Shown here: piece by piece, positions 1-64,000 of the stretch | How positions within the stretch are numbered: the stretch's first letter is position 1 | How the letters are laid out: every line of letters begins with the position of its first letter | Sequence record: NC_041878.1 | Length of the DNA stretch: 64,000 bases | Strand: one strand, 5' to 3' | Notes under the pieces: generated by a model | What the model saw: only the letters and a program-made list of their open reading frames with translations | What the model was told of the DNA's origin: nothing | Databases searched by the model: none | Translations under genes and position numbers: made by a program

Positions 1-2
1 AA

Positions 3-1064
3 ACTGGTTGGTGTTTTGCTGATGGTGCATATTGGACATGGAATGGTGAAGGTGGAACTGTAACTAAGGTTGTTCCTAATTTAAACCAAAATGCATACTT
101 AAAAGGTATCACCACAAGTGGTGTAACAAAAACTGATGCAGTAATTGCTGATTCTGGTACAATAAGTAGCACATCAATAACTATACCAGATCACTATCAT
201 GGTGTTGGTAGCATGTTGGGGTTAAGTGGATCACAAGGTGATGATGTTGCATTAATTATTGGTAAAACTTTTAACGATGGTCGAGTATATAGTGGTGCAA
301 TTGTAACTGGTGATAAACAAAAATATTGGACAACATCAGTTAACGGTTCAGACACACGTACTGCTATTAGTACTACATATGCAATTTACCCAAATGGAAA
401 TACAAGTTCACACACCCATAACCTAACAGGTATTGATGTTGGACACTTTAACGTTGCAATTTTATATAATATTGCAGAACCAAGTTTAGCTTTGAACCAA
501 ACAGCGGGTGATGCTCGTTATGTTCTTAAATCTGGTGATGTAATGACTGGCTCATTAACTATTGCTAACAGTGCTGCGATTCAAGCTAATGATACAAACT
601 TAGTATTATGGTTCCGTAACACTTCAGGTGGTGAACGTGGTGCAATTTATCATAGCAATACTACAAACACATTACGCTTCCGTTCTGCTGGCGGTACTGA
701 AATGATACTTTCAAATACTGCTGGATTAACTATTAATAGTTTAGTAGTATCTTCACAAAGTGCAACTGTTGCTGGTCGTAATGTTGTTCGTGCAATTAAC
801 GGAACAACAGCAGATGCTAATGGTAACGTTACATTAAGCATTACTGGTGGTGTAGTAACAAACGTTCGTCGTGGTGCTGAAATAGCTGTGAACCGTTATA
901 CATTGGGTGGTGAATCATTTGTGTACCGTTGTGGTGAAGGTCAATATGTTACTGGTTTTAACATATGGTCAAAAAGTGGTAATAACGATGAATTCCGTGA
1001 TATGTATTCACGTCCTGTTCAAATTTTAATTGATGGTGCATGGAGAACAATTTCTGATGTTTAA
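3..1064 (+). CDS. Tail fibre protein, C-terminal part (5'-truncated by window edge)
   Basis: Frame of ORF 213..1064 is open back to base 3 (TGWCFADG...VPNL...YLKG, tail-collar-like). HxH motifs DHYH and SHTH. C-terminus GQYVTGF...YSRPVQILIDGAWRTI is typical of fibre tips and is followed by a chaperone-like gene. Confidence 0.8.
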   Translation, partial: TGWCFADGAYWTWNGEGGTVTKVVPNLNQNAYLKGITTSGVTKTDAVIADSGTISSTSITIPDHYHGVGSMLGLSGSQGDDVALIIGKTFNDGRVYSGAIVTGDKQKYWTTSVNGSDTRTAISTTYAIYPNGNTSSHTHNLTGIDVGHFNVAILYNIAEPSLALNQTAGDARYVLKSGDVMTGSLTIANSAAIQANDTNLVLWFRNTSGGERGAIYHSNTTNTLRFRSAGGTEMILSNTAGLTINSLVVSSQSATVAGRNVVRAINGTTADANGNVTLSITGGVVTNVRRGAEIAVNRYTLGGESFVYRCGEGQYVTGFNIWSKSGNNDEFRDMYSRPVQILIDGAWRTISDV

Positions 1065-1470
1065 AAGATATGAAAAACCTGGCGGTTATACAAACGTTCA
1101 GTACTGGATCGATGAAAACGGTACTGATTGGTATGATTATGCAGATAATGCTACTTTAGATAACTTGAAAGTATTAGTAGATGTAAACAATATTGTTGTG
1201 GGTTTCCATATGGATGCTACAACTCTTACACCAACTGATGCAACACTTTATGAAGTAACTCTTGACAAGGTTCCAGAAGACTTACAATTGGTTAAGTATT
1301 CATATGATGGAGACAAATTCTACTTAACTGAGTTTCCTGACAGTGGTCAGTCCATTGATGATATTAAGAATGAATTGTTTATGTTAATGCTTAAAACCAA
1401 AATGACTACTGAAGAAAAGAAATACTTTGAAGAACTCAAAGAATTGCTTCTACAAAAACTTTCGAAATAA
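1057..1470 (+). CDS. Tail fibre assembly chaperone (Tfa-like)
   Basis: ATG 1057 with GGAG at 1042-1045 overlaps the fibre stop. YWIDENGTDWYD...LKVLVD..IVVGFHMDATTL pattern resembles Tfa/Caudo_TAP chaperones. Confidence 0.65.
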   Translation: MFKRYEKPGGYTNVQYWIDENGTDWYDYADNATLDNLKVLVDVNNIVVGFHMDATTLTPTDATLYEVTLDKVPEDLQLVKYSYDGDKFYLTEFPDSGQSIDDIKNELFMLMLKTKMTTEEKKYFEELKELLLQKLSK

Positions 1471-1471
1471 A

Positions 1472-1500
1472 TGAAACGAAAATAAAACGTATGATATAAT
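1472..1500 (+). promoter_or_regulatory. Putative middle-class promoter TGAAAC-N14-TGATATAAT
   Basis: TGAAAC 1472-1477, 17 bp spacer, extended -10 ending at 1500; upstream of the DsbA-like gene and polB. Confidence 0.75.
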
Positions 1501-1504
1501 GTAG

Positions 1505-1536
1505 GCATCCTAGCGGAGAGTTAGGATGCTTTTTTT
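1505..1536 (+). terminator. Intrinsic terminator-like hairpin
   Basis: GCATCCTA...TAGGATGC followed by T7. Confidence 0.7.
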
Positions 1537-1553
1537 ATACATGGAGAAATGAA

Positions 1554-1856
1554 ATGGCTAAGAAGACTGAATCTAAAATTGAAGCACATGAGCTAAACGA
1601 CGCACAGCGTAAAAAACTTAAAGACGGCCTCAATTCCGCAGTAGTACAGCTAACCCACCTTGATACACTAAAAGAATCTTATGCAGATTTCATGGATACT
1701 CTAGCAGATGAACTAGGTCTTGACAAGGCTAAGTTGAAATCAGCAGCAATGCGTATCTATAAGCAAGACTTCTTTGATAAAGTTCGTGCACAAGACGAAG
1801 TAGAAACTATTCTAACAGTTTCCGGTAATCTTGCACAAATGGAAGATGATGAATAA
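1554..1856 (+). CDS. dsDNA-binding protein, T4 DsbA-like
   Basis: 100 aa; ELGLDKAKLKSAAMRIYKQD resembles T4 DsbA ELGVDGKMFNRLLALYHKD as recalled; GGAG RBS. Confidence 0.5.
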   Translation: MAKKTESKIEAHELNDAQRKKLKDGLNSAVVQLTHLDTLKESYADFMDTLADELGLDKAKLKSAAMRIYKQDFFDKVRAQDEVETILTVSGNLAQMEDDE

Positions 1857-1863
1857 TAAAAAT

Positions 1864-1889
1864 GCCCCAGGATTGGGGCGTTTTGTTTT
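1864..1889 (+). terminator. Terminator-like hairpin
   Basis: GCCCCA-ggat-TGGGGC then GTTTTGTTTT. Confidence 0.55.
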
Positions 1890-1915
1890 AAGTGCGTGTA
1901 ACATAAGGAGATAAG

Positions 1916-4900
1916 ATGTACGTAGATGGATATATGGATAGGAAAAAGACTGGTGAAGTTCTTCACGTAGCTGAACGTGTTAATGGTCAGCGTATACTGC
2001 GTGAAATTGAACCAGTATATGAGTACTATGTTGAATCTCCACGTGGTGAATACAAAACAATCAATGGAACATTAGCTGAGAAGTTTGAATTTACCCGTTT
2101 TTCAGAAATGAAAAAACAAATGGATGCATTGCCAAGTACTGCCAAGATCTATGAAGCAGATTGTAATGTAACCTTTAAAACATTAGCAAAACACTATATG
2201 GGGAAGCCATCTCCTGACCTCAATATTGTATTTTTCGATATTGAAACAGACTTTCACCCAAAATTTGGATATGCTCAACCAAGTGACCCTTTCAACCGTG
2301 TAACTGCAATTTCATTGTATCAAAGCTGGACAGGTAAAGACTATGTTCTTACTATGGCTCCTTCTGATATGGAAATTCATGAAGCACAAGACATTATTAA
2401 TCGTCTTAATGCTGAAACCAATGATCCAAACAGCGTAGTTATTCTATATACTGAAGAAACTGAAATGTTTCAGATGTTCTTTGAGCTAATTGAAGACGGT
2501 GATGTACTATCTGGATGGAACAGTGAATTCTTTGATATTCCATACATGGTTAATAGAACCAGAAAAATCTTTAACGAAGCAACGTTAGCTCGTTGGTGTC
2601 TATGGAATAAGAAACCAAATGCTCGTGAAGCAGATATGTTTGGTAAAACCATCGTAACCTATGATTTGGTCGGTCGTGTTCACTTAGACTATCTAGCATT
2701 GTACAAAAAACATGCTGGACAAGTTGAACAATCATATAAACTAGATTATATTGCTGAAAAAGTAACTGGTGAAAACAAAGTATCCTATGATGGTTCATTG
2801 GATAAATTGTATCGTGAAGATTATGAAACATTTCTACGATATTCTAAGCAGGATAGCATCCTACTAAAGAAAATCGATGAAAAAATGGACTTCATTAATC
2901 TACACAACCGACTAGCACATAAAGAATGTGTACTAATCAGTACTACTATGGGTTCTGTAGCACTAATCGACACTGCAATCATCAATCTTGCTCACCAGCG
3001 TGGGGAAGTCGTGTTCAATAAGCGTAAACTTGAAGAAGATGAAGTTGATTTCGAATATCAAGATTACGAAAGTGAATTTGATGATGAAGATGACGAAGAA
3101 ATGCAAGCTGGATCTAAAGCTGCTGGTGCATGGGTACAAGATCCAGTACTAGGATTGATTGATTTCTTAGGATGTGTTGACTTTAACTCACTATATCCTA
3201 CAGTTCTTCGTACATTAGGCATGAGTACTGAATGTATTCTAGGTCAATTACGTCAAACATATACTGATAAGTATTTGGCTGATAAAATTGAAGAACAACG
3301 TGTCAAATGGGCGAGAAATGGTGGTCGTGGTAAATTTGAACCTAAATGGACTGAAGCATGGCATGGTTTGTTCGCTAGTGTTGAATTCACGATGGTTCGT
3401 GAGAAATCACGAGATGTAATTACCGTTGATCTAGAAGATGGTACTACATTTGAGGCAACAGGTGCTGAATTATATGATATTATCTTCGGTGAAGATAGTA
3501 CTATTGTTCTAAGTGCGAACGGAACACTATTTGATAAGACTAAGTACGGTGTTATTCCAGAAATTCTTACAATGTGGTATTCTGAACGTAAAGCACAACA
3601 AAAAATGGTCATCGACTACAAACACTTGGCTACTGATGGTTGGGAAATTCCAGAAGAAGCAGTACAAGCAATCGAAAAAGAGTTACAATCTCTATCTTTC
3701 GGTACTGGAATTTATAAAACCAACTTACATGAAGATGATCCTATCTATCTAATGCGTTTAGCACTAGGTAAAAACGATTATACTGAAATGGCTAAGATTA
3801 TTGCATCTAATGGTATGCGTGTAGAAGATAATCACATCTTCGTTGCAGAAGCAGATAAGAAGTACTGTAAAACTCAATCTGCATTCTGGAAACAGAACCA
3901 ACAGATCCGTAAGATTCTTCTAAACTCACTATATGGTGCGTTGTTGAACAAAGGTTCACGTTTCTTTGATAAACGTCTAGGTCAATCAGTTACATTAACT
4001 GGCCGTAGTATGACTAAACACCTAGCAAGTAAGATTAATGAAGTTTGTACTGAAACTTACGATCATAGTGGTGGCGTAGTAGTATATGGTGATACTGACT
4101 CCGTATATTTCAGTGTTGCACACTACTATAAAGAGAATGACATTCCGTTTGAAATGTCAAAAGATGAAGTTGTTGAACTTTATCAAATGATTGGTGATAC
4201 TGTAGGTGCATCATTCCCTGAATTTATGGATACAACCTTTAACACTGGTATTGAAAAGGGTAAAATCGTTGGTGCGGATCTGGAAATGGTCGGTTCTCGT
4301 GGTCTATTCTTGAAGAAAAAGCGTTACGCTATTCTAAAATATTGGGAAGATGGGTTCCGTTTAGATGTGGATGGTAAACCCGGTAAGATCAAAGCTATGG
4401 GTCTTGAAATTAAACGCTCAGATACTCCAAAATACATCCAAAACTTCCTAGAAGAAACGTTGGTTGCATTACTAATTGGTGAAACTGAAGAAGAATTACG
4501 TGCTCGTGTACGTGCATTCAAGAAAGAGTTTAAAGATAAACCAAGTATTGAGAAAGGTTCACCAAAAACAGTTAAAAACTATACCAATAAGGAAAAAGAA
4601 TACCAAGATACAGGTAAATGTAGTGTAGGTCATGTACTTGCAGCTATACAATGGAACAAACTTCGTGATTTGAATGATGATAAATCAGTTCCAGAAGCTA
4701 CTGACGGTACTAAAGTGATTGTTTGTGACCTAAAACCTAATCCACTAGGTATTAAGAAAATTGGTTATCCAATTGACTGTGCTGATTATCTTCCAGAATG
4801 GTATCTAGAGCTTCCGTTCGATGATGATACAATGGAAAAAGCTGTACTAACCAAGAAATTAGGTAACATTTTCGGTATTCTAGATATGGATATTGGTATC

Positions 4901-4948
4901 GATGAGAAAAGTACCATTGAATTGAACACTGGTTTCTTCGAATGGTAA
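1916..4948 (+). CDS. gp43: DNA polymerase, family B (T4 gp43-like) with 3'-5' exonuclease domain
   Basis: Exo motifs FFDIETD, GWNSEFFD, YKLDYIA; polymerase motifs VDFNSLYP, KILLNSLYG, YGDTDS, KKRY. Confidence 0.97.
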   Translation: MYVDGYMDRKKTGEVLHVAERVNGQRILREIEPVYEYYVESPRGEYKTINGTLAEKFEFTRFSEMKKQMDALPSTAKIYEADCNVTFKTLAKHYMGKPSPDLNIVFFDIETDFHPKFGYAQPSDPFNRVTAISLYQSWTGKDYVLTMAPSDMEIHEAQDIINRLNAETNDPNSVVILYTEETEMFQMFFELIEDGDVLSGWNSEFFDIPYMVNRTRKIFNEATLARWCLWNKKPNAREADMFGKTIVTYDLVGRVHLDYLALYKKHAGQVEQSYKLDYIAEKVTGENKVSYDGSLDKLYREDYETFLRYSKQDSILLKKIDEKMDFINLHNRLAHKECVLISTTMGSVALIDTAIINLAHQRGEVVFNKRKLEEDEVDFEYQDYESEFDDEDDEEMQAGSKAAGAWVQDPVLGLIDFLGCVDFNSLYPTVLRTLGMSTECILGQLRQTYTDKYLADKIEEQRVKWARNGGRGKFEPKWTEAWHGLFASVEFTMVREKSRDVITVDLEDGTTFEATGAELYDIIFGEDSTIVLSANGTLFDKTKYGVIPEILTMWYSERKAQQKMVIDYKHLATDGWEIPEEAVQAIEKELQSLSFGTGIYKTNLHEDDPIYLMRLALGKNDYTEMAKIIASNGMRVEDNHIFVAEADKKYCKTQSAFWKQNQQIRKILLNSLYGALLNKGSRFFDKRLGQSVTLTGRSMTKHLASKINEVCTETYDHSGGVVVYGDTDSVYFSVAHYYKENDIPFEMSKDEVVELYQMIGDTVGASFPEFMDTTFNTGIEKGKIVGADLEMVGSRGLFLKKKRYAILKYWEDGFRLDVDGKPGKIKAMGLEIKRSDTPKYIQNFLEETLVALLIGETEEELRARVRAFKKEFKDKPSIEKGSPKTVKNYTNKEKEYQDTGKCSVGHVLAAIQWNKLRDLNDDKSVPEATDGTKVIVCDLKPNPLGIKKIGYPIDCADYLPEWYLELPFDDDTMEKAVLTKKLGNIFGILDMDIGIDEKSTIELNTGFFEW

Positions 4949-4963
4949 TAACAAGGACAAAAT

Positions 4964-5476
4964 ATGACTGACAATACAAATATTCACCAACGTATAGGTG
5001 AAGCAATTACTTCTGGTGGTGAATTCAACATCATCCGTGCAAATGATGCACACGAAGAACAAATTCTAACGGATGCTGGGTTTGTAAAAGTCGGTTCAAT
5101 GAAAGAAGGAGACAATATTGTCTCCTTATTCAAAGTTGAACTGAAAGAAAAGGAAGTAGTAAAAATTGTTGAAGTTCCGAATAAAAATAATTCGTGGCCT
5201 TTCAATGAACAATCACATCCATTCCGTAAACCTGATCCTGGTATTTGGTATCATAACAACCATTGGTTATATAACGATCCAAATAAACCAATGTACACAT
5301 ACTTAGGCACTAATACTGGTGATGCAGATTGGGTACAAAAAGATTTGAACAAAACTATATCTACCAGTACTGGAACCTTCAATGGAACTCTAAGTACACG
5401 GTTAGATGCTGCGTATGATCCTCTAAGTATTTTACAGGATTATACATTCAATACAGTACTAGATAAAAAGCAGTAA
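4964..5476 (+). CDS. Hypothetical protein
   Basis: 170 aa ORF, AGGA RBS, same strand and codon style as neighbours. Confidence 0.7.
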   Translation: MTDNTNIHQRIGEAITSGGEFNIIRANDAHEEQILTDAGFVKVGSMKEGDNIVSLFKVELKEKEVVKIVEVPNKNNSWPFNEQSHPFRKPDPGIWYHNNHWLYNDPNKPMYTYLGTNTGDADWVQKDLNKTISTSTGTFNGTLSTRLDAAYDPLSILQDYTFNTVLDKKQ

Positions 5477-5482
5477 AAATTA

Positions 5483-5511
5483 TGAAACGGGTACATTTTT
5501 TATGATATAAT
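5483..5511 (+). promoter_or_regulatory. Putative middle-class promoter inside an 11-bp inverted repeat
   Basis: TGAAAC 5483-5488, 17 bp spacer, TGATATAAT; arms ACGGGTACATT 5487-5497 and AATGTACCCGT 5509-5519. Confidence 0.75.
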
Positions 5512-5540
5512 GTACCCGTAAACAAATGGAGAAAGAACAA

Positions 5541-6272
5541 ATGGAATTACGTGACGTACTACGCGACCTAGTAACAACTACTGCTGGCATTGATTTTGAT
5601 TGTATCGCTATTTCTAGTGAAGATCGTGGTCAAGGTCAACGTGTTTATATGGAAGCCTATACATCTGACAAAAACTTAGTTATGCGAGCATATACTAAAG
5701 AAGACGTACCTGAAGTTGTTGGTCGTTTTGGTATCGGTAATCTTGGAATGCTTCAAGGTCTACTAAACCTAAACGTTTACAAAACTGACAGTACTAAAAT
5801 TAGTGTGAATGCGAAAGACGGTGTTGTTAAAAGCCTAACTTTCAATTCAGACGAAGCAAATACCAACTATCTAGTAGTTGCGGAAAAATATATTCCTAAC
5901 CAACCACGATTCACTGACCAACCATATGACGTACAGGTTACACCTAGTGCCGCAAAGGTCAATGAACTAAAAAGCTTCTCAGGCGTGTTTAAATCATTCT
6001 CTGCTTTAGTCACTCCCTTCACTGAGGACAACAGCTTATATTTCTACGTTGGTGAAAAGAATAAAAACAACCACACAGGTACTTTACTATTCGGTAAAAC
6101 TGAAGGTGAACTATCTAAAGGTTATGGTTATCCAATTGACCGTGTACTTCAAGCATTAAACCGCGTATCTAATGCTGAAACTAAGTCACTAGGGTTTACC
6201 AAAACTGGTATGTTAAACGTAACCGTAGATACTGGTGTTGCAGTTTATAGCATCTACGTAAGTGGTAGCTAA
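5541..6272 (+). CDS. Probable sliding clamp (gp45-like)
   Basis: About 243 aa, alternating alpha/beta pattern, FGIGNLGML like T4 gp45 fgIYDL motif; sits after polB with its own promoter; start moved to ATG 5541 (GGAG 5528-5531). Confidence 0.55.
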   Translation: MELRDVLRDLVTTTAGIDFDCIAISSEDRGQGQRVYMEAYTSDKNLVMRAYTKEDVPEVVGRFGIGNLGMLQGLLNLNVYKTDSTKISVNAKDGVVKSLTFNSDEANTNYLVVAEKYIPNQPRFTDQPYDVQVTPSAAKVNELKSFSGVFKSFSALVTPFTEDNSLYFYVGEKNKNNHTGTLLFGKTEGELSKGYGYPIDRVLQALNRVSNAETKSLGFTKTGMLNVTVDTGVAVYSIYVSGS

Positions 6273-6280
6273 TTTTTTAC

Positions 6281-6305
6281 AGGGAGCGTAATGCTCCCTC
6301 TTTTT
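6281..6305 (+). terminator. Intrinsic terminator
   Basis: AGGGAGC-gtaat-GCTCCCT then CTTTTT. Confidence 0.7.
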
Positions 6306-6318
6306 ATTTGGATTTAAA

Positions 6319-6933
6319 ATGAGTACACCTAGATTTATTGCTGATCTACATATGGGTCATAAAAATATCTGGAAATATCGTCCTGTGTTCGAAAGTACTT
6401 TACACAATGATCTATATTTTCAGTACATTCTGCAAGAAACTTGCAAAAAACGAGATACGATGTTCTTTCTAGGTGATGTTATTTTTGATGAAATCTATTT
6501 AGAATTCATTAAGAACTTACCTGGTACTAAAATTCTAATTCTCGGAAACCACTGTACAGAATATATCAGTACTTCAAAACTATGCGAAGTCTTTGATGAA
6601 GTTCATGGTCTTTTGAAGTATAAAGAATTCTGGCTTTCACACGCACCACTGCACCCTGATGAACTACGTGGCAAAAAGAATGTCCACGGACACGTTCACA
6701 GGGAATCAGTGAATGATTTAAACTACCTTAATGTTTCTGTAGACAGTTCTTTCATGAACTTTTTCCCTAGAACCTTACATGAAATTCGTCAAGGTTTTGA
6801 GACAGTAAATAACGAACAAAAGATTTTTGCTGGTGTACCAAACGAAGATGCGTTAAGTGTCATCGAAAGTAATCCAATTGCAAAAGAAGCTTATTACAAA
6901 GCACTAGAAGAATCAAGAAAATTTACTGTTTAA
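6319..6933 (+). CDS. Calcineurin-like metallophosphoesterase
   Basis: Motifs ADLHMGH, FLGD, LGNH, SHAP, HGHVH. Confidence 0.85.
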   Translation: MSTPRFIADLHMGHKNIWKYRPVFESTLHNDLYFQYILQETCKKRDTMFFLGDVIFDEIYLEFIKNLPGTKILILGNHCTEYISTSKLCEVFDEVHGLLKYKEFWLSHAPLHPDELRGKKNVHGHVHRESVNDLNYLNVSVDSSFMNFFPRTLHEIRQGFETVNNEQKIFAGVPNEDALSVIESNPIAKEAYYKALEESRKFTV

Positions 6934-6944
6934 AAGGATTTAAA

Positions 6945-7154: not shown

Positions 7155-7171
7155 TTTGAATGGAGTCAAAT

Positions 7172-8172: not shown

Positions 8173-8208
8173 AAAAAAAGGAGAACATATGTTCTCCTTT
8201 TTCTTTTT
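8173..8208. terminator. Bidirectional terminator between convergent genes
   Basis: A7-GGAGAAC-atat-GTTCTCC-T-rich. Confidence 0.8.
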
Positions 8209-8218
8209 TAATTTATAA

Positions 8219-8875
8219 TTAAATTGACAATGCTGGGATAGCTTTGTACACTTTAATTGCAAAGTTTCCAGCAGCCGCAGCAGTAGCAGAAGAAGTTAGA
8301 ATAACTTCAGTGCCAGTACTGGTTAGCATTGGAACACCAGTTAGATCATCAATTAGTAGACGACCTTCATCGATTGAACCAGCAGGAACACCCTGGAAAG
8401 TTGTAAGATCTTTATCAAACACATTTGCACGTTCTACTAGGAAAGTAATAACGTTTGCAGAAGCTACAGAAGCAGCAGCAGAAACACCAGCAGGGGCATT
8501 TTTGAAGCCAGCAACCGCAACACCTTGTGCAGTTAGAGAAGTACTTAGAACAACCGCACGTTGTTGAACAATGTCAATCACACGTTTAACGTTTGTTTGT
8601 GCAGCATATGCAGCAGTGTAATCAGCTTCTAGGGAAGCAACTACGAATGCAGTACCATCAACACGAACAACACCTTTGTCATTCAAAAACTCTACAATTG
8701 CATCTGCATCTTCAGTGTTTAGAAAACGTTGTAGTTCAGCGAAAGATGCTACCGCACCAGTTACTTTAACAACTACGTTTGAAGCACCGCCAATAGCGAT
8801 AGAAACAAGTGCGTTCTTACCATAGAAATAACCAAGAACACCACTTTCAGAGAAACCATTAATACGTTCTAACAT
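8219..8875 (-). CDS. Probable virion structural protein (paralogue of the next gene)
   Basis: 218 aa, Ala/Val-rich, GGAG RBS; shares QRAV(V/L)..T(S)..L, ITFLVER/ITYIVER and IKV(Y/F)KA(I/L)P with 8891..9451. Confidence 0.6.
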   Translation of the reverse strand: MLERINGFSESGVLGYFYGKNALVSIAIGGASNVVVKVTGAVASFAELQRFLNTEDADAIVEFLNDKGVVRVDGTAFVVASLEADYTAAYAAQTNVKRVIDIVQQRAVVLSTSLTAQGVAVAGFKNAPAGVSAAASVASANVITFLVERANVFDKDLTTFQGVPAGSIDEGRLLIDDLTGVPMLTSTGTEVILTSSATAAAAGNFAIKVYKAIPALSI

Positions 8876-8890
8876 ATTTTAATCTCCCTA

Positions 8891-9451
8891 TTATAGTAGT
8901 ACTGGTAGTGCTTTAAACACTTTGATTGCAACAGCAGCAGCGGCAGCAGGAGTACCGTCTTTCTTCTGGAATACACCAGCTTGAGCTAGGTTAGCAGAAA
9001 TTTCAGCAGTTGGATCTACAGTTAGTGCATAAGTAGAACCTGGTTTGTTTTCTTGTTTGGTAAACACATCTTGACGTTCAACGATATAAGTAATACCGAA
9101 AGAATTATCAGCTAGAGTACCAGCTTTACCGAAAGCGATAACATTACCACCAACAGTTTCAAAGCCAGAAGCAGTAGGATCAACATCGTTAGAGAGAGCG
9201 GAAGTAGTTACTAGAACCGCACGTTGTGCAAGAGCTTGAGCAATGATAAATTGGTTTTTCTCAGCAGCAGATTTTGCGGTTTGAGCAGCATTATCGCCAG
9301 CTTCAGTACCATCAAATGCAACTGCGGATACGCCGATTTCTACATCAGCAGGTAGAGTAACAACAACAGTCACGAAACCGTTATCGCCACCCCAAAATTC
9401 GCGACTGTTAGCAGACATGCCATAGTTACGATCAAAAGAATTAAGACTCAT
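8891..9451 (-). CDS. Probable virion structural protein
   Basis: Start moved to ATG at 9451 (AGGAG upstream); late-type CATAAATA upstream on the minus strand; paralogous to 8219..8875. Confidence 0.6.
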   Translation of the reverse strand: MSLNSFDRNYGMSANSREFWGGDNGFVTVVVTLPADVEIGVSAVAFDGTEAGDNAAQTAKSAAEKNQFIIAQALAQRAVLVTTSALSNDVDPTASGFETVGGNVIAFGKAGTLADNSFGITYIVERQDVFTKQENKPGSTYALTVDPTAEISANLAQAGVFQKKDGTPAAAAAVAIKVFKALPVLL

Positions 9452-9571
9452 AAAAAATCTCCTATGTCTAATTTGGTGCAGGTACTTATTGACCTGCTTA
9501 ATGTTATTTATCAAATCCTTTTCGTTAGTATTAATAACGTAAAAAATTTAAGTAAAAAGTTAATGTGCAAT

Positions 9572-9579
9572 TATTTATG
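9572..9579 (-). promoter_or_regulatory. Putative T4-like late promoter CATAAATA
   Basis: Reverse complement of TATTTATG, upstream of the structural paralogue pair. Confidence 0.5.
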
Positions 9580-9586
9580 TCTTAAA

Positions 9587-9615
9587 TGAAACTGCACATA
9601 AAAATGTGGTATAAT
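9587..9615 (+). promoter_or_regulatory. Putative middle-class promoter
   Basis: TGAAAC-17bp-TATAAT with TGG extension, upstream of the RNase H gene. Confidence 0.75.
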
Positions 9616-9645
9616 CAAGGAAATTATGGAAAATGGAGTTCCTAA

Positions 9646-10631
<986 letters not shown>

Positions 10632-10632
<1 letters not shown>

Positions 10633-11132
10633 TGGCTATTTTAAAAATTCTTACAGAGTATTCATTCATTGTAGAAACCGGAACTGGTGAAAAGATGGGA
10701 ATACTTGTGAATTATGATGAAGGAACAACAGAACGTACAGGTATCGAATTCTTTAACTCTGATGGTGCACTAAAGTTCAATAATATGAAAGAACTTGAAG
10801 AACTCTTAGGTGAAGAATTCGTATATGAAGAAATTGAAATAACTGACAGTACTAATGCATCTAAAGCGTTAGGTGATTATCCAATCAACGACACTGATAC
10901 AATTATTGATATTTTATACGATGATCCTCTAGGAATCGGTACTTTCAGGAAAAGTGCTCGGTCTAAAAAGCGTTTTTATCCTGGCTGGTGGTTAGTACGA
11001 AGTGAAAATGGATCTTATCTTCCTCGACTAACACTAAGTGTTGACATTTATAACGAAAGAAACAATACAGAAGCACTATATGGGCCGTTTAAAACCTATA
11101 TGGATGTAACTTATACGTTAAAACAGCTATAA
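10632..11132 (+). CDS. Hypothetical protein
   Basis: 166 aa, TAATG coupling to rnh, C-terminal YGPFKT. Confidence 0.7.
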
Positions 11133-11139
11133 ATGATGT

Positions 11140-11165
11140 AGTACTGCCTTAGTGCAGTACTTTTT
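11140..11165 (+). terminator. Terminator-like hairpin built from two AGTACT sites
   Basis: AGTACTGC-cttagt-GCAGTACT followed by TTTT. Confidence 0.55.
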
Positions 11166-11175
11166 AAGGAAGAAT

Positions 11176-13517
<2,342 letters not shown>

Positions 13518-13519
<2 letters not shown>

Positions 13520-13525
13520 TAAATA
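13518..13525 (+). promoter_or_regulatory. Putative late promoter AATAAATA
   Basis: TAAATA core about 30 nt upstream of 13556. Confidence 0.4.
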
Positions 13526-13543
13526 TATCTATACAAGATTTGA

Positions 13544-14845
<1,302 letters not shown>

Positions 14846-14871
14846 GCCCCCAACCCAAATTACTAAATAAA

Positions 14872-14900
14872 TGAAACGTTGTACTATTTTGTGGTATAAT
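14872..14900 (+). promoter_or_regulatory. Putative middle-class promoter (distal ssb promoter)
   Basis: TGAAAC-17bp-TATAAT with TGG extension. Confidence 0.75.
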
Positions 14901-14958
14901 GTAGAAGAATTTGAGGCAACTCGAATAAGTCAGTCAAGACTATAAAATGACAAAAATG

Positions 14959-14987
14959 TGAAACGCTACAAGAAATTGTGGTATAAT
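14959..14987 (+). promoter_or_regulatory. Putative middle-class promoter (proximal ssb promoter)
   Basis: TGAAAC-17bp-TATAAT with TGG extension. Confidence 0.75.
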
Positions 14988-15072
14988 ATGAATGTCTGAA
15001 GCAGGAAGCGGAAGACAAAAGAAGCAAAATTAAACTAAGTAACAAAGAAGCAAATTGATAAGGAAATCAAAA

Positions 15073-25080: not shown

Positions 25081-25112
25081 ATTTGAAGTACTGACACAGA
25101 CAAAGGATTTGA

Positions 25113-35880: not shown

Positions 35881-36654
35881 ATGAAAGTAGATTATACAAA
35901 ACCAATGGATTTGGATTTTATCGAAGAATTTTGGGAAGATTTAGATATGAATCAAGTCATTCAATATCAAAAATTACCACAAGATTTTATCGAAAAACAT
36001 TTTGACAGACTTGAACCTAATGCATTAGTTCGTTATCAAAAAATGACAATGAATTTTATAAAAGAAAAATGGGAATGGTTTAACAAAAATGTAATCGCAC
36101 AATATGTAGTAATGCCTATAGAATGGATTAAAGAAAAGTGGACTGATTTTCAATCCACTGCCATTGAAACGATTACTAAGTATCAAACATTGACTCAAGA
36201 TTTTATCAGAGAAAAATGGGATCAAATGATTGCATTTTCTGATAAAGTGGCACAACAAATAAGTCGTTATCAAACAATGGCGGTTGACTTTATTAAAGAG
36301 AAGTGGGAATATCTGGACAAAAATTACATTTCAAAATACCAAAAACTTACAGTAGACTTTATTAAAGAAAAATGGTCAGAGTTAAGTATTGCCGCAATTG
36401 CTACTTATCAAATCATCGAAGATTCAGTGCGTGATTTACTAGGTCTTCAACCACCAGCAAAAACAATAACTGGTGCACAAATTCTGGCACTAGACCCATG
36501 TGAGGATGGTATGGTACGTTATCATGCACATACTCCAAATGATAGTACTGTTCTGACTTGGAACCAACTATTAGAACTACACAATACCTCCAAAGATGGT
36601 CAGCGTGATATTCACTGGTTATCATGGAAACTTGGAAAAAAGATTAACACATAA
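35881..36654 (+). CDS. Tandem-repeat (Trp-containing helical repeat) protein
   Basis: About 7 units of YQxL/MxxDFIxEKW at 23-29 aa period, plus a distinct C-terminal domain (LALDPCEDG). Confidence 0.75.
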   Translation: MKVDYTKPMDLDFIEEFWEDLDMNQVIQYQKLPQDFIEKHFDRLEPNALVRYQKMTMNFIKEKWEWFNKNVIAQYVVMPIEWIKEKWTDFQSTAIETITKYQTLTQDFIREKWDQMIAFSDKVAQQISRYQTMAVDFIKEKWEYLDKNYISKYQKLTVDFIKEKWSELSIAAIATYQIIEDSVRDLLGLQPPAKTITGAQILALDPCEDGMVRYHAHTPNDSTVLTWNQLLELHNTSKDGQRDIHWLSWKLGKKINT

Positions 36655-38012: not shown

Positions 38013-38014
38013 TA

Positions 38015-38043
38015 TGAAACGCCAAAATAAAATATGGTATAAT
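38015..38043 (+). promoter_or_regulatory. Putative middle-class promoter
   Basis: TGAAAC-17bp-TATAAT with TGG extension. Confidence 0.75.
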
Positions 38044-38072
38044 GTACTCGTTAACAGAAAAAGGAAACCGAA

Positions 38073-42267: not shown

Positions 42268-43604
42268 GTATTACGCTTACGGACAAGCAACAATATATTT
42301 TTGACGATCTAATTGATAAAATTAACAACTTTCCTGGCAGAATTGAAGCAGTAATTGTTGGTAACGCTGGTACTGGTAAAAGTACCCTTGTTTCCAAAAT
42401 CATTGAAAGTATCTACCAGGGATATAACATTGCAGTAACTTCCCCAACTCATAAAGCAAACTCAGTACTGAGAAAAATGCTTTTGAATACCGGAGTAACC
42501 AAAGAAGATGCACTCATTAGTACTATTCACTCTTTTCTAGGATTAAAACTACAATATGAAAAGAACCGTCAAGTGCTAAAGCATGACCCACGTTCACCGA
42601 ATAGTACTGCTATGGTTGATGTACTATTTGTTGATGAGTGTAGTATGATTTCTGAAGAAATGTATACACACATTTTGAATCAGATTCACAGGGTTCGCCG
42701 TGCAGTAATCTTCATTGGTGATGATTGTCAGCTACCACCAGTTGAGGCTGAAGGTACAGCAGGTGAAACAAAACTAAGTCCTACATTCAACATTCGCTTG
42801 CAATACAAACTTGATGAAGTATTACGTCAAGCACTTGATAATCCAATTATCAATATTGCAACACAGATTCGTGAATGTATCGGTACTGGTCGTGATCCGA
42901 TGACTATTCTAAATGCGATTGATGGGTTTGAAACTATTACACCAATAGATGATGAAATGTTATTCTTGGATGTGTATAAAGAATACATCAACGAAAATCG
43001 CGGTTCAGCTAGAAAGATTTACGACTTCGTTCAGGAAAACAAAATCATTGCTTACACAAACTACCGTGTAAACTTTGCGAACATGTATATTCGTAATGAA
43101 GTATTCCATGAACATACTGAGGAAGAATTTATTCCAGGTGAACCAATCGTATTTGAAACTACCACTGAAAACTGTCCTTATACAGTACAGGAAATTATTC
43201 AATGTCCAGAAATACGTAAAGAATCATTCTTAGGAATAGATTGTTGGCAATTCAAACTACCGAACGGTAATTATCTATTAGGAGTTGGACCATATTCACG
43301 TATGAAGATGGATGAGTACTTGGAAGATCTAGTACTTAAAATTGAAAAGAAAGAAGAAAACCCTTTGACGAAAAAGCCTTATATGTGGCAAGATTATTAT
43401 GTAATCAAGAATAAGATTAACGTAATTAATTATCCATATGCTACAACGGCTCACAAATCACAGGGAAGTACTTTTAATAACATTTGGTTCGATACGGACT
43501 TCATTGAGCGTATTCCGAACAACGATACTAAGTGCAGGATTCTTTACACTGCGTTAACTCGTCCTCGTTATAATGTTATGTTGCGTAAAAATGGTAGGTA
43601 CTAA
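42264..43604 (+). CDS. dda: SF1B DNA helicase (Dda/RecD-like)
   Basis: GNAGTGKST, SPTHKA, STIHS, VDECSM, GDDCQLPPV, TAHKSQGST, YTALTR. Confidence 0.88.
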   Translation: MSITLTDKQQYIFDDLIDKINNFPGRIEAVIVGNAGTGKSTLVSKIIESIYQGYNIAVTSPTHKANSVLRKMLLNTGVTKEDALISTIHSFLGLKLQYEKNRQVLKHDPRSPNSTAMVDVLFVDECSMISEEMYTHILNQIHRVRRAVIFIGDDCQLPPVEAEGTAGETKLSPTFNIRLQYKLDEVLRQALDNPIINIATQIRECIGTGRDPMTILNAIDGFETITPIDDEMLFLDVYKEYINENRGSARKIYDFVQENKIIAYTNYRVNFANMYIRNEVFHEHTEEEFIPGEPIVFETTTENCPYTVQEIIQCPEIRKESFLGIDCWQFKLPNGNYLLGVGPYSRMKMDEYLEDLVLKIEKKEENPLTKKPYMWQDYYVIKNKINVINYPYATTAHKSQGSTFNNIWFDTDFIERIPNNDTKCRILYTALTRPRYNVMLRKNGRY

Positions 43605-52786: not shown

Positions 52787-52836
52787 TCATTAGTGGGGTA
52801 CAGGAAGTACCCCGAATTAACAAAGAGGCAAACGGA

Positions 52837-56700: not shown

Positions 56701-56708
56701 GAGGATTT

Positions 56709-57492: not shown

Positions 57493-57510
57493 AAAAAATT
57501 ATGGTATAAT
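57482..57510 (+). promoter_or_regulatory. Putative middle-class promoter, variant TGAAAT box
   Basis: TGAAAT-17bp-TATAAT with TGG extension. Confidence 0.65.
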
Positions 57511-57538
57511 GTACCTATTAGCGTGAAAAGGGATTTTT

Positions 57539-57913: not shown

Positions 57914-57923
57914 GGAAACAGAA

Positions 57924-58244: not shown

Positions 58245-58287
58245 AATACGCCCTGCATTGTCAGGGCTTTCTTTTTGTCGAGATTTT

Positions 58288-59534: not shown

Positions 59535-59542
59535 GGTAAACA

Positions 59543-60163: not shown

Positions 60164-60172
60164 TCCCCTTTT
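60152..60172 (+). terminator. Intrinsic terminator
   Basis: AAAGGGGA-gtaa-TCCCCTTT-T. Confidence 0.6.
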
Positions 60173-60220
60173 CCGTTTAGTAAATAAGATTATATTATTA
60201 CTATTATAGGGAAGATATAC

Positions 60221-60790: not shown

Positions 60791-61473
60791 TGACTAAACG
60801 AATTTACGAACGTGCATTAAGACCGTTAGTACTTAAAGATTTAATTCATCCTATCATTAGCGTAGATGAATATACACCAAAAATTGATGAATCAAATATT
60901 GTAGTACTTTTCCAAGTACTCGATAACTTTGATGCAGCATATGATTTAAGTTCATTTATTGAACGTTCACCAGTTGATGTAATTGATACTGAAGCTGCTG
61001 AAACTCCTAACGTAGACGGACGCTATCAAGTGTTTGTTGAATTTGAACGCAACGGTGAGTTTCCAGCTAAACTTATTGCATTGATGAAATCAATTGAAAA
61101 CATTTGTCCAGACCCAGGCTGGAAATTACAAATGTATGGCGTTAATGATCCAATCGATTTAGATATTGATGAAATCACTAATGACATGGAATTAGTTAAT
61201 GAAGAAGAACTTAAAGAATTCTTCGACTTTGCAGCAGTTAACGTGGAAATCGTTAATGAAAGCATTAAAATTAAAAGTGTGTACGGTACAGAATTGCATT
61301 ACAGCAAAGGCTCTGGTATCGTAAATGAATCATATGTTAAAGGTTTACTACATGATGATACTTCACTTGACAGTACTAGACTTAGTGCAGTTCTAGGTGA
61401 AAACTATGATGTATTAAAATCTGGTTCAGAATATATTGTTGGCATTAACGGGAAGTATATAGTACTACGATAA
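60790..61473 (+). CDS. Hypothetical protein
   Basis: 227 aa, TAATG coupling, repeated VNES/VNEE motifs. Confidence 0.7.
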   Translation: MTKRIYERALRPLVLKDLIHPIISVDEYTPKIDESNIVVLFQVLDNFDAAYDLSSFIERSPVDVIDTEAAETPNVDGRYQVFVEFERNGEFPAKLIALMKSIENICPDPGWKLQMYGVNDPIDLDIDEITNDMELVNEEELKEFFDFAAVNVEIVNESIKIKSVYGTELHYSKGSGIVNESYVKGLLHDDTSLDSTRLSAVLGENYDVLKSGSEYIVGINGKYIVLR

Positions 61474-62267
61474 TGAAAATTTACAATATGTTAATGGCAC
61501 TTCATGAAAGTACTAGGACAGAATTGCACCAAATAGGGAATGTTGGTTTAAGTAAGAGAATGTACGTAAGAACCTATGAAATAAATCGTATAGGTAAAAA
61601 TTACGATAACATTAATCGAAATGATGTAAGTACTGAGATGGTTTTGAAAGCATATCTTGCACGTAAAGTATTTGTTAATGAAAAATACCTAAGAGGTAGA
61701 TATTTGATTGACGAAGTTTATGATGCAGAGGTTGCTTTCACTAAGGGCTTATGGAAAATCTTTTGTATGGAAGTTTTCGGTACAACGATGCCTGAGCTAC
61801 CAGTACCCACAACATATAACGAACTACAAACTATATTCGACAACAAAGCTGCATTTATGGATTTTGAATTATACACTACAGTTAAAGAAGCTGTAATACA
61901 TAATCAAATAGTAGATTCAGTACAGTGTGTTAGTATTCGAGATTTTGATTTATTTTGTTCATTACCTGGGATTCCAGGATGGACTTCAGTACAACACGGT
62001 GCAAGTTTAGTTGATGGAAGGAATGAAGCTCCACAAAGACTAATACAAGCTAGTTTAGGTATGTACAAGTATGATTATTTGTCATGTCCTGAACCATATG
62101 TTAATTTCTGGAAAGAACGTGCAATGCAAGCTCTACAAAAAGCGGTTGCAATTCTCCAGAAAACATATATACTTAAATTCAGAAACGCGACAATGTATGA
62201 CTTATCTCCAGTGCCGGAGAGATTCACGCCAATAAACGCTTTTCATTGGAATATAAAAAGGACGTAA
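61473..62267 (+). CDS. Hypothetical protein
   Basis: 264 aa, TAATG coupling. Confidence 0.65.
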   Translation: MKIYNMLMALHESTRTELHQIGNVGLSKRMYVRTYEINRIGKNYDNINRNDVSTEMVLKAYLARKVFVNEKYLRGRYLIDEVYDAEVAFTKGLWKIFCMEVFGTTMPELPVPTTYNELQTIFDNKAAFMDFELYTTVKEAVIHNQIVDSVQCVSIRDFDLFCSLPGIPGWTSVQHGASLVDGRNEAPQRLIQASLGMYKYDYLSCPEPYVNFWKERAMQALQKAVAILQKTYILKFRNATMYDLSPVPERFTPINAFHWNIKRT

Positions 62268-62282
62268 TTTTCGTCCTTTTTT
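62255..62282 (+). terminator. Intrinsic terminator closing the core region
   Basis: AAAAAGGACG-taatttt-CGTCCTTTTT then T. Confidence 0.75.
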
Positions 62283-62293
62283 CATTTTAGCCC

Positions 62294-62325
62294 TTGACAG
62301 GGCATGAAAAATGCAGTACTATAAT
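62294..62325 (+). promoter_or_regulatory. Consensus sigma70 (putative early) promoter
   Basis: TTGACA-17bp-TACTAT(AAT). Confidence 0.75.
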
Positions 62326-62403
62326 CACATGAAAACAACGGCTCTAGCCGTGAACTTCTATGGGTTAAAAAATAAACTTTCTATATCTTAAAAAGGAACC
62401 AGA

Positions 62404-62943
62404 ATGAAAACTGTAACTTTCGTATACACCGACAACGTAACCTACAAAGCCGCCAACGTAATTTCTATTGACAATCACGGCGATACTATTGAGTACGTTC
62501 AGGACAGCACCAACACTGATGGCTCTATTGTCGGTCTGAACATGCGTTCTGTTGACACCTACGATCTTCTGTACGCAGTAGTTAAAGATGTTGACACCAA
62601 AGAAGTGACTATCATTCCTGGTCTGTTTGACAGCTTTGATGTTGTTCCTAAAGGTGTAGCAGTTCAACGTCAGGCAAACATCGATGCAGAAGCGGCTCGC
62701 GTAGCAGCAGATCGTGCAGCGAAAGCACCAGCACGTGAAGCAAAAGAAAAAGCAAAATACGAAGCTCGTCGTGCGGCTCGTAAAGCAGAATGGGTTGGCA
62801 ACGAAGGTGATGTTGCGGTGGCCGACACCACTGAAGCGGCTCCAGTAGCAGCAGAAACCGAAGATAACAGCGTGTTCGGTCAACTGGCAGCAGCAGGTAT
62901 CTCTGCTCGTGATCTGGCTGTTCTGCGTGAAGTTCTAAAGTAA
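62404..62943 (+). CDS. Putative early protein of unknown function
   Basis: AGGA RBS, strongly host-like codons, Ala/Lys/Arg/Glu-rich helix. Confidence 0.8.
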   Translation: MKTVTFVYTDNVTYKAANVISIDNHGDTIEYVQDSTNTDGSIVGLNMRSVDTYDLLYAVVKDVDTKEVTIIPGLFDSFDVVPKGVAVQRQANIDAEAARVAADRAAKAPAREAKEKAKYEARRAARKAEWVGNEGDVAVADTTEAAPVAAETEDNSVFGQLAAAGISARDLAVLREVLK

Positions 62944-62976
62944 TAAAATTTGACTTTCAAATAAGGAAAAGGTAAT

Positions 62977-63177
62977 ATGAAATCTGGTAATTACATTATT
63001 GCAGGTACTGATAAGGCAACTGGTCGTAGCTCAATTTCGGCAAAACCAAAAGAGCATGTAAGCGAAGCATCAGCGAAAGCTGAAGCAGCACGTCTTGCTC
63101 AGGACAACGACGAAAAAGATTTTACTGTACTACGTGTTGTCGCTACTGCTTCAGTAGCTAAAGTATCCTGGCGTTAA
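62977..63177 (+). CDS. Small putative early protein
   Basis: 66 aa, AGG RBS, followed by a terminator. Confidence 0.7.
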   Translation: MKSGNYIIAGTDKATGRSSISAKPKEHVSEASAKAEAARLAQDNDEKDFTVLRVVATASVAKVSWR

Positions 63178-63187
63178 GGTTTGTTTT

Positions 63188-63212
63188 GGGGAATGAAAGT
63201 TCCCCGCTTTTT
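63188..63212 (+). terminator. Intrinsic terminator
   Basis: GGGGAAT-gaaa-GTTCCCC-GC-T5. Confidence 0.7.
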
Positions 63213-63235
63213 AATTTAACTGCGAGAATTATAAG

Positions 63236-64000
63236 ATGAAAGGCAAATATTTTTTCAACGATGGTCGTCAGAACATTGAAATTCAAGAGTTCGATTACGA
63301 CTATGTTCGTAACTCATTGTTAAAAGTATTTGATAAGAACGTTGCTAAGAAATATATCTTCAACGTTATTGTCAGCCGTACCTATGATGGTAACGGTATG
63401 CCGATCTTTGATGTTCGTCCGTTGAATCTGAACGACATTTTCTATGATAGTACTCGGCTCCGTGTACTGGAAATGATGTTAGATGACATTTATTTCGGAC
63501 GGATCTCAATCAAAGAACTTCCGGTTCCTCGCTTACAGCAGGAATATCAGGAGTATCTTGAAGGTCGTGCAAAACCAGTAGTACAAAATACTACACCTGA
63601 CGTTCCTGCACCAATCGTGTTCGAACGTGTAGAACTGAACGAAAACGATTCACGTCTTCCTGCTATCATTGAAATGCAGAAAGATCAAGAAAACTTTCAT
63701 CCAATGAAAGTACTCGACTGGATTGAAAACTTCGAAGTGTGTAGCCAGGAAATCACGGTTAGCATTCAGAAGTCATCCGAAGAACAGATTCGTTTAGTAC
63801 AGGTCTTGAAAACTAACAGTGAATACATCCACGGTGTTTTCAACAATCTGACCTCTGTACTGGAAAGTTTGTTCCCACTGAAGCCAAGCTTTACACAACG
63901 TCTGTTCGGTTATAAGAAAGATGTTGAAGTGAAGCAGGAAGACTTAGGTACTATTCTAAGTACTCTGCGTAATGCGGTTGCTATTGACCCTAATCGCTTT
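63236..64000 (+). CDS. Hypothetical protein, 3'-truncated by window edge (absent from the supplied ORF track)
   Basis: ATG 63236 opens 255 uninterrupted codons (MKGKYFFNDGRQ...LRNAVAIDPNRF) to the window end. Confidence 0.8.
   Translation, partial: MKGKYFFNDGRQNIEIQEFDYDYVRNSLLKVFDKNVAKKYIFNVIVSRTYDGNGMPIFDVRPLNLNDIFYDSTRLRVLEMMLDDIYFGRISIKELPVPRLQQEYQEYLEGRAKPVVQNTTPDVPAPIVFERVELNENDSRLPAIIEMQKDQENFHPMKVLDWIENFEVCSQEITVSIQKSSEEQIRLVQVLKTNSEYIHGVFNNLTSVLESLFPLKPSFTQRLFGYKKDVEVKQEDLGTILSTLRNAVAIDPNRF

Follow-up and report, generated by a model that had tools for sequence, protein, structure and literature searches.

We found that AGTACT, a perfect 6-bp palindrome, is strongly over-represented in Pectobacterium phage vB_PcaM_CBB (hereafter CBB), a RaK2/GAP32-like jumbo myovirus, and in its enterobacterial relatives. 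The window analysed here is a 64,000-nt stretch corresponding to bases 186001-250000 of this phage. The excess is real, it is conserved in relatives and it is not driven by codon usage, so AGTACT most likely serves as an unmodified docking word for a protein. We tentatively propose that this protein is a dimer made by the phage and that its binding marks phage DNA. A literature search found no published link between AGTACT and these phages, and the excess appears to be unreported.

The window (positions 1-64000, sites counted without strand assignment) contained 137 copies of AGTACT, compared with 19.8 ± 4.4 in dinucleotide-preserving shuffles (largest shuffle, 30), and AGTACT ranked first among its hexamers. 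The ratio of observed to expected copies was 6.4 for the window and about 9.8 for the whole genome, within an overall range of six to twenty, and the GTAC core occurred 457 times in the window against 209 expected. Each 2-kb bin held 2-8 sites and no bin was empty; 133 sites lay inside coding sequences (CDS) and 4 were intergenic. Markov models of orders 0 to 4 predicted 21.3, 18.9, 32.6, 66.3 and 125.0 copies, respectively. The excess therefore held over orders 0-3. Order 4 alone absorbed it, since its fit already uses AGTAC and GTACT, the highest-ranking pentamers in their own right (z = 17.7 and 15.7). Apart from AGTACT, nearly all 6-bp palindromes with a G or C were under-represented in CBB. 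As the ScaI site, AGTACT belongs to the class of Type II palindromes on which restriction avoidance acts in phages, but the sign is reversed: the word is 6-20-fold more common than composition predicts, instead of depleted.

These counts agree closely with an earlier sequence-only reading of the same DNA, made by hand. All 14 AGTACT coordinates that it gave for bases 1-6600 were exact (2.19 expected), its "at least 18" copies in 8200-14800 became 19 on recount, and its estimate of about 49 GTAC against about 21 expected in bases 1-6600 became 50 against 21.6. Its examples of the three codon phases (369, 1100 and 3145) were also correct, with CDS sites falling 69/19/45 among the phases. The GC content, put at roughly one-third, was 36.2%. 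Sites had been placed both in intergenic DNA and in an early region; the four intergenic sites bear out the former, whereas the latter does not apply to this window, which carries replication and structural genes.

AGT, ACT, GTA and CTA are common codons in the window, and TAC was also listed as favoured, such that AGTACT might be a by-product of codon usage and dipeptide composition. The shuffles refute this explanation, to which we assign practically no probability. Shuffling synonymous codons within each gene left 35.6 ± 5.1 copies (largest, 53 in 500 shuffles) compared with the 133 observed in CDS, and AGTACT was the top hexamer after this correction (z = 18.8); permuting codons gave an expectation of 23.3 ± 4.8. 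The excess was 3.3-6.3-fold in each of the three codon phases, and 69 of 108 Ser-Thr pairs were encoded as AGT-ACT, where 16% was expected. The density of sites in non-coding DNA equalled or exceeded that in coding DNA. The synonymous shuffle was discriminating: CTGCAG in phage PA5oct, a candidate lineage-specific palindrome, was fully explained by codon usage in the same test (13 observed, 12.3 expected).

Neighbours of the word that kept the GTAC core were enriched 2-2.5-fold, whereas those with an altered core were mostly near baseline (0.4-1.3-fold), except for the pair AGAACT/AGTTCT (1.9-fold). AGTACT acts as the product of its two half-sites, which is the pattern expected of graded binding energy. 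We found no extended consensus flanking the word. G at -1 and C at +1 were disfavoured. Spacing between sites was more even than chance in four separate genome regions (CV 0.76-0.875), with no helical (10-11 bp) phasing among sites, and per-gene density showed no link to gene conservation or gene length. In six relatives, AGTACT was retained 1.5-2.1 times as often as phase-matched hexamers, and synonymous positions within it were more conserved, with an odds ratio above 1 in every comparison. The sequence-only reading had named two tests in advance, codon-preserving shuffles and synonymous-site conservation in relatives. Neither refuted the idea: the excess persisted in the first and the conservation was present in the second. 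These outcomes make AGTACT a signal at the level of DNA, maintained throughout the clade.

Comparable stretches of GAP32, XbC2, Kaldavass, Hallingskeid, BF, Munch, A4 and RaK2 showed a 5-10-fold excess of AGTACT, which is thus conserved in at least nine sampled phages from several genera. The excess was absent from Vibrio, Agrobacterium and Pseudomonas relatives, including some jumbo phages of similar size. It is a trait of the enterobacterial RaK2-like jumbo phage clade, and offers a simple diagnostic for spotting this clade in metagenomes. Unrelated phages of enterobacteria are purged of it, with 0 copies against 8-9 expected, and Escherichia coli K-12 MG1655, our host comparison genome, has one quarter of the expected number, about 0.06 per kb. 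Relative to E. coli DNA, the density of AGTACT was about 35-fold higher in the window and about 115-fold higher in the terminal repeats. GCGC, with a host density of about 7 per kb, is wholly erased from these phages.

Across the CBB genome, scanned as separate segments, we counted 1235 copies, with a density that varied three-fold and peaked in the 22.5-kb terminal repeats at both genome ends, where we counted 11.9 sites per kb in non-coding DNA compared with 4.1 in coding DNA. Within the terminal repeat we found 14 sigma70-type promoter cassettes with paired AGTACT sites at the -35 and -10 boxes (one per box), lying 20-22 bp apart and 25-34 nt upstream of start codons; all 14 fell inside the repeat. 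The first 50 kb contain 11 sigma70-like consensus sites, of which 9 have AGTACT at -35 and 8 have it at -10. As in operators, palindromes sit at fixed positions over promoter boxes and recur across promoters. The promoters listed in the CBB paper are another set, which lacks AGTACT. The cassette was also found in GAP32, BF, Yen9-04 and metagenomic relatives. The syntenic 50 kb of RaK2 had neither the cassette nor a density peak, although RaK2 has the AGTACT excess, so the use in promoters was added in one branch and does not lie at the root of the excess. Early promoters are controlled in the terminal repeats of other large virulent phages: T5 shuts off its pre-early genes, and the TF1 protein of SPO1 binds early promoters in the terminal redundancy, selecting phage DNA through a modified base. 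The CBB repeat resembles these systems in being crowded with small early genes that follow strong promoters of the sigma70 type, and in having candidate protein sites that overlap promoter boxes. It differs from SPO1 in that the discriminator would be a sequence word.

Several other explanations could produce such a word. HIP1 of cyanobacteria, Dam GATC and CcrM GANTC are likewise palindromes over-represented through genes, and these are methylated and/or kept by methyltransferase-linked repair. A phage methyltransferase might similarly act on AGTACT or GTAC, in which case the excess would reflect relaxed avoidance together with use of the methyl mark. CBB has three methyltransferases (Dam-family, N4/N6 (gp157) and C5), other enterobacterial phages avoid AGTACT, and protection would help a palindrome-purging phage with more than 1200 ScaI-type sites. 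However, a published Tombo analysis of nanopore data for native versus amplified DNA from Kaldavass and Hallingskeid, which carry a 7-10-fold excess, reported only GATC, CCWGG and TGCAT (PMC11780129); no modification of AGTACT was thus reported in these two clade members, in contrast to the HIP1, Dam and CcrM words, and its deamination neighbours are not depleted. The N4/N6 enzyme, with close homologues in only 18 records from two genera, was rejected as a clade-wide modifier: it is missing from the Asterius, Alcyoneus and Munch lineages, which also have the excess. The C5 enzyme has homologues at ≥60% identity in about 55 records, PBECO4 and K64-1 among them. Bisulfite data for RaK2 suggest 5mC of the CpG type, and there is no CpG in AGTACT. 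Protection would also explain tolerance of the word, but not a ten-fold excess. We consider a methyltransferase target improbable. The sequence-only reading had suggested a modifier or a binder, and these results speak against the modifier. Alternatively, a context-specific mutation or short-patch repair bias (HIP1/VSP-like) could drive DNA towards AGTACT without any reader. Excess and conservation are by themselves compatible with such a bias, which would account for the genome-wide excess in every phase, the higher density where DNA is weakly constrained, and the apparent conservation and clade specificity. It would be expected to drain the transition neighbours of AGTACT, but these are not drained (observed/expected 1.10 for AGTATT/AATACT and 1.25 for AGCACT/AGTGCT), and even spacing and fixed promoter positions are unexpected from mutation alone. 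No Vsr-like gene is annotated, and known VSP effects fall far below 6-20-fold. A mutational origin therefore seems unlikely to us, if somewhat less so than a methyltransferase target.

The word could also take part in DNA transactions, as a palindromic, orientation-free regulator of a helicase-nuclease or as a preferred priming site. Its density peaks at both genome ends and its even spacing would suit such a role, and there is precedent in E. coli Chi, 5'-GCTGGTGG-3' (sequence from PMC10025158). Genuine Chi is itself enriched about 13-25-fold in this phage, so end-entering nucleases are a real pressure. Like AGTACT, Chi is short, strongly over-represented genome-wide, in coding DNA and beyond codon expectation, and it tells a DNA-processing machine which DNA is 'self'. 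Chi, however, shows strand bias and has RecBCD as its reader. Known words of the Chi type lack symmetry and are recognized in single-stranded DNA, and three bases suffice for a primase, whereas AGTACT is fully palindromic and its half-sites are additive. We found no cognate enzyme, promoter placement would be left unexplained, and we doubt this role about as strongly as we doubt a methyltransferase target. A host protein, or another factor titrated by the phage, is less probable again. One candidate was SlmA, whose 12-bp site is a palindrome read by a dimer, has AGTACT as its central six bases, and requires GT at positions 1-2 and AC at positions 11-12 (PMC3020112). A host reader would fit the restriction of the trait to phages of Enterobacterales and the rarity of AGTACT in E. 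coli, but none of 1092 non-redundant CBB sites had both essential SlmA flanks (21 and 14 had one correct half). The GT and AC flank dinucleotides were at background frequency, and the disfavoured G at -1 and C at +1 also speak against a host reader; the flanks rule out SlmA sites. In addition, phages of the same hosts purge AGTACT rather than collect it. Less probable still is a mechanical role, in which evenly spaced, flexible GTAC steps would aid packing or ejection of the 350-kb genome: even spacing and the presence of sites in all regions agree with it, but similar-size jumbo relatives lack the excess, density varies three-fold along the genome, and the full hexamer is selected, not the central step only.

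Taken with the motif anatomy, the distribution of AGTACT points to a positively maintained, DNA-level recognition word of enterobacterial RaK2-like jumbo phages. A candidate reader would be a two-fold-symmetric, presumably dimeric, double-strand-DNA-binding protein that is made or carried by the phage. Given densities about 35-fold (window) and 115-fold (repeats) above that of E. coli, such a reader would therefore load almost only on phage DNA, and its loading could mark that DNA as self with no need for a chemical mark. Within the Mimasvirus/Eneladusvirus branch, AGTACT is in addition part of the promoter class restricted to the terminal repeats, where reader binding at the paired -35/-10 sites would switch very early promoters. 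A broader version is possible but doubtful: self and host DNA might be told apart by sequence alone, with GCGC erased, AGTACT amplified, and the unmodified self word protecting or licensing the phage genome while that of the host is shut down or degraded. The binder and host-DNA discrimination proposed in the sequence-only reading fit the anatomy of the sites, but no reader was found among the candidates tried. Neither the HTH protein gp468 nor the PrlF-like gp503 is present clade-wide. Nucleases, regulators and ten small virion proteins, when scanned against Pfam and PHROG, yielded no GTAC-type enzyme and no DNA-binding domain; this includes the small virion proteins encoded in the window. 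An ordinary repressor would, moreover, be titrated by more than a thousand intragenic sites, which counts against a binder of that kind.

AGTACT provides a sequence handle on how large virulent phages with unmodified DNA distinguish their own genome from that of the host, and on how such phages time the silencing of their earliest genes. It is one 6-bp word, present more than 1200 times per genome, selected in the face of protein-coding constraints and placed in one promoter class of the repeat, which makes the search for a reader protein straightforward. It also indicates that palindrome statistics in phages can hold positive signals besides avoidance.

The three hairpins with GTAC-containing arms described in the sequence-only reading (5487-5519, 11140-11161 and 52795-52813) were all present. 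In an intrinsic-terminator-like hairpin downstream of gp273 (11140-11166, plus strand), read directly from the sequence, AGTACT copies at 11140 and 11156 make up the 8-bp stem, with a run of T after it. The inverted repeat at 5487-5519 (plus strand) extends across the spacer and the -10 box of a middle promoter of the TGAAACG type, and the short G+C-rich hairpin at 52795-52813 (plus strand), with GTAC in both arms, lies in the gap between two topoisomerase II genes. A candidate sigma70-like promoter upstream of gp337 (62294-62325, plus strand), with a TTGACA box, has an AGTACT (62315-62320) overlapping its -10 region. One intergenic AGTACT (25087-25092, unstranded) falls just downstream of the -10 box of a middle-type promoter before the primase gene, and two intragenic copies lie 16 bp apart at 43315-43336 (unstranded).

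The window is 100% identical to bases 186001-250000 of Pectobacterium phage vB_PcaM_CBB (CBB), a jumbo myovirus of the RaK2/GAP32-like type (genus Mimasvirus; 378 kb). Encoded in it are DNA polymerase, terminase, proteins of recombination and replication, ribonucleotide reductase, topoisomerase II and a large number of virion proteins, with 75 of its 80 CDS on the + strand; it is not the early region in which the sequence-only reading had placed some sites. At 36.0% GC it contains 137 copies of AGTACT and 457 of the core GTAC. Dinucleotide-preserving shuffles gave 19.8 ± 4.4 AGTACT (maximum 30), which upheld the window-wide excess that had been proposed, and AGTACT was the first-ranked hexamer. 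The coordinates assigned to individual copies were all exact, with 14 in the first 6.6 kb (2.2 expected); positions 8200-14800 held 19, where at least 18 had been claimed, and the enrichment of GTAC suggested for the first 6.6 kb was also found (50 there versus 21.6 expected). In the proposed Markov comparison, the excess stood over orders 0 to 3 (21.3, 18.9, 32.6 and 66.3 expected) and was absorbed by the order-4 model only (125.0), because its fit includes AGTAC and GTACT, themselves the strongest pentamers. AGTACT therefore acts as two half-sites, centred on GTAC, whose contributions multiply.

Within-gene synonymous-codon shuffles ruled out codon usage as the source of the excess. Inside CDS there are 133 of the 137 sites (69, 19 and 45 in the three codon phases), whereas 500 shuffles gave 35.6 ± 5.1 (maximum 53); the enrichment, which according to the sequence-only reading might vanish in such shuffles, persisted in every phase (3.6-fold, 6.3-fold and 3.3-fold). 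AGTACT was the top hexamer (z 18.8), with ranks 2-6 occupied by its overlapping extensions, and GTAC was the top 4-mer (z 11.6) and the sole clearly enriched 4-bp palindrome; TGCA was only marginal in the window (z 2.4). The same test detected known signals, namely the avoidance of late-promoter-like words, Shine-Dalgarno-like words and restriction sites, and correctly dismissed CTGCAG in phage PA5oct as codon-driven (13 versus 12.3). We found that the protein sequences of the window are themselves bent towards the word: there are 108 Ser-Thr pairs versus 75.8 expected and 143 Val-Leu pairs versus 109.5, and Thr-Ser matches expectation and Leu-Val is not raised. AGT-ACT spells 69 of the 108 Ser-Thr pairs (16% expected). 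Window CDS were also strongly depleted of A/T runs relative to synonymous shuffles (AAAAAA, 54 versus 155; also TTTT, AATT and AATTTT), as well as of the late-promoter-like TAAATA/TATTTA and of GGAG. The tRNA region of CBB (genome pieces L013 and L018) includes genes for Ser-GCT, Thr-TGT, Leu-TAG and Tyr-GTA. The codons AGT, ACT, CTA and TAC spell AGTACT across its three frames; Ser-GCT, Leu-TAG and Tyr-GTA can decode AGT, CTA and TAC directly, and Thr-TGT possibly ACT by wobble.

Among hexamers, AGTACT ranked first in the syntenic DNA of eight relatives, with observed/expected ratios of 6.8 in both GAP32 and XbC2, 7.3 in Kaldavass, 6.5 in Serratia phage BF, 5.0 in Munch, 6.2 in E. coli phage A4, 6.6 in RaK2 and 10 in Hallingskeid. 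The excess marks the clade and stops abruptly at its border, the next relatives out being at or below expectation: Vibrio phage 2.275.O (51% DNA polymerase identity; ratio 0.53), Atu_ph07 (42%; 0.13) and PA5oct (40%; 0.41). Unrelated phages with hosts of that order have purged AGTACT, with 0 sites in each of RB43, muut and Dickeya phage JA33 (8.4-9.1 expected in each) and 6 versus 9.3 expected in SGF2. E. coli K-12 had 3 versus 11.6 expected in each of two 50-kb samples. Comparison with relatives shows that the sites are maintained. CBB sites were kept 1.5-2.1 times as often as phase-matched hexamers (71 versus 48.4 expected in GAP32, 56 versus 32.0 in XbC2, 47 versus 23.3 in Kaldavass, 53 versus 27.1 in BF, 24 versus 11.5 in Munch and 21 versus 10.6 in A4); because the relatives are not independent samples, the individual p-values are not to be multiplied. 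The synonymous-position conservation envisaged in related phages was present, as third positions at conserved amino acids were better kept within AGTACT than outside it in every hexamer-context comparison.

Across the CBB genome, scanned as eight separate pieces that were never joined, we counted 1235 AGTACT in 378,379 bp, approximately 9.8 times expectation. Density is U-shaped, with 24-38 copies per 5 kb in the terminal repeats (22.5 kb each), approximately 10 at 100-250 kb and 10-23 at 250-355 kb; the window is therefore the genome's poorest part. Within the terminal repeat, non-coding DNA has 11.9 copies per kb versus 4.1 in coding DNA. Four separate regions each showed more regular spacing than chance would give (CV 0.76-0.875), and no helical phasing of the sites was found. 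Flanking bases contribute little, although G is disfavoured at -1 and C at +1, and there is no longer consensus.

The terminal repeat also contains 14 sigma70-type promoters, near-identical cassettes of identical layout (positions 4961-17870 of L009, which covers CBB 1-50000). In each, an A/T-rich upstream element is followed by an AGTACT over the first -35 base and by a second, 20-22 bp away, abutting the TATAAT box. All lie on the + strand, 25-34 nt upstream of small ORFs. None was found in the 333-kb unique part of CBB (14 of 14 are within the repeat), and the promoters tabulated in the CBB paper form a different set, which lacks AGTACT and does not include these 14. The cassette also occurs in GAP32, BF and Yen9-04, as well as in six metagenomic contigs (355-371 kb). 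The syntenic 50 kb of RaK2 has a 7.8-fold excess of AGTACT with neither cassette nor density peak; the use in promoters was therefore added in one branch, over a general excess that is older. In the window, one of the hairpins described as having GTAC arms, at 11140-11161, is terminator-like, with a stem built from AGTACT, and one promoter candidate has AGTACT (at 62315) overlapping its -10 region. Middle-type promoters (TGAAACG box plus extended -10) often have GTAC or GTAG directly after the TATAAT box (1471-1553, 5477-5540, 14846-15072, 38013-38072 and 57493-57538). An unrelated phage family (IMG/VR contigs L022, L023 and L025-L028; GC approximately 42%) has one promoter that shares the cassette layout, with AGTACT at -35 and at -10; in L022 the DNA around it is non-coding and contains several more (A)GTAC(T) copies, together with two TTATCCACA words.

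The sequence-only reading had suggested a phage-encoded modifier or binder. CBB encodes Dam-family, N4/N6 and C5 methyltransferases. In a published nanopore study that compared native with amplified DNA of Kaldavass and Hallingskeid, modification was found at GATC, CCWGG and TGCAT only (PMC11780129). The N4/N6 enzyme is confined to two genera, and bisulfite data for RaK2 point to CpG-type methylation. AGTACT is thus probably not a methyltransferase target. It is probably not a repair-driven palindrome either, its transition neighbours not being depleted. The sites are also probably not SlmA sites, as the essential flanks (PMC3020112) occur in 0 of 1092 non-redundant CBB sites. The named DNA-binding proteins that were tried are not clade-wide and so are probably not the readers, and neither the nucleases nor the small virion proteins scanned yielded anything relevant. 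The main rivals of the reading favoured below are a mutation or repair bias, which is unlikely, and, with slightly less weight and on a par with each other, a missed modification and a part in priming or in the control of nucleases. TGCA is depleted, to a ratio of 0.33, only in XbC2 (L004) and Kaldavass (L005), in the latter of which TGCAT modification has been reported; the ratio is approximately 1.8 in the window, the GAP32 stretch (L003), L006, L007 and L008.

The binder half of the suggestion is retained tentatively: a symmetric protein may recognise AGTACT in double-stranded DNA, and the word may serve as a sequence-only self mark. We favour such reading because the word is a palindrome with two additive half-sites, is retained despite coding constraints, is evenly spaced, is densest in the least constrained, earliest-acting DNA, occupies fixed places within a single class of promoters and has no reported modification in the two assayed relatives, Kaldavass and Hallingskeid. 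Coverage per unit length would then matter, and it is the phage-to-host density ratio of approximately 35-115 that would make the word a self mark. Our literature search found no earlier report of the AGTACT excess in these phages. Chi and HIP1 are likewise over-represented; unlike them, AGTACT is a restriction-type palindrome, is apparently unmodified and sits in a phage that otherwise purges palindromes.

GCGC is absent throughout CBB, with 0 in all genome pieces (window, 0 versus 54 ± 7 in dinucleotide shuffles and 46 in synonymous shuffles). None of the stretches sampled from the RaK2-like clade contains it either, yet its frequency is normal in RB43, muut and the Vibrio, Agrobacterium and Pseudomonas relatives, and E. 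coli shows a 1.6-1.7-fold enrichment. In CBB, almost every 6-bp palindrome with at least four G/C is likewise at zero. CBB is strongly enriched for the E. coli Chi octamer, at 12 versus 0.47 expected in the first 50 kb (L009) and 23 (+) and 15 (-) genome-wide, including 7 on the + strand of each terminal repeat, which suggests RecBCD pressure on the genome ends. Between the ribonucleotide reductase subunit genes, CBB has an ORF similar to one of Bacillus phage G (window 35881-36654), GAP32 has a different gene, annotated as an endonuclease (L003 36823-37560), and BF has none; this gap is probably a mobile insertion slot.
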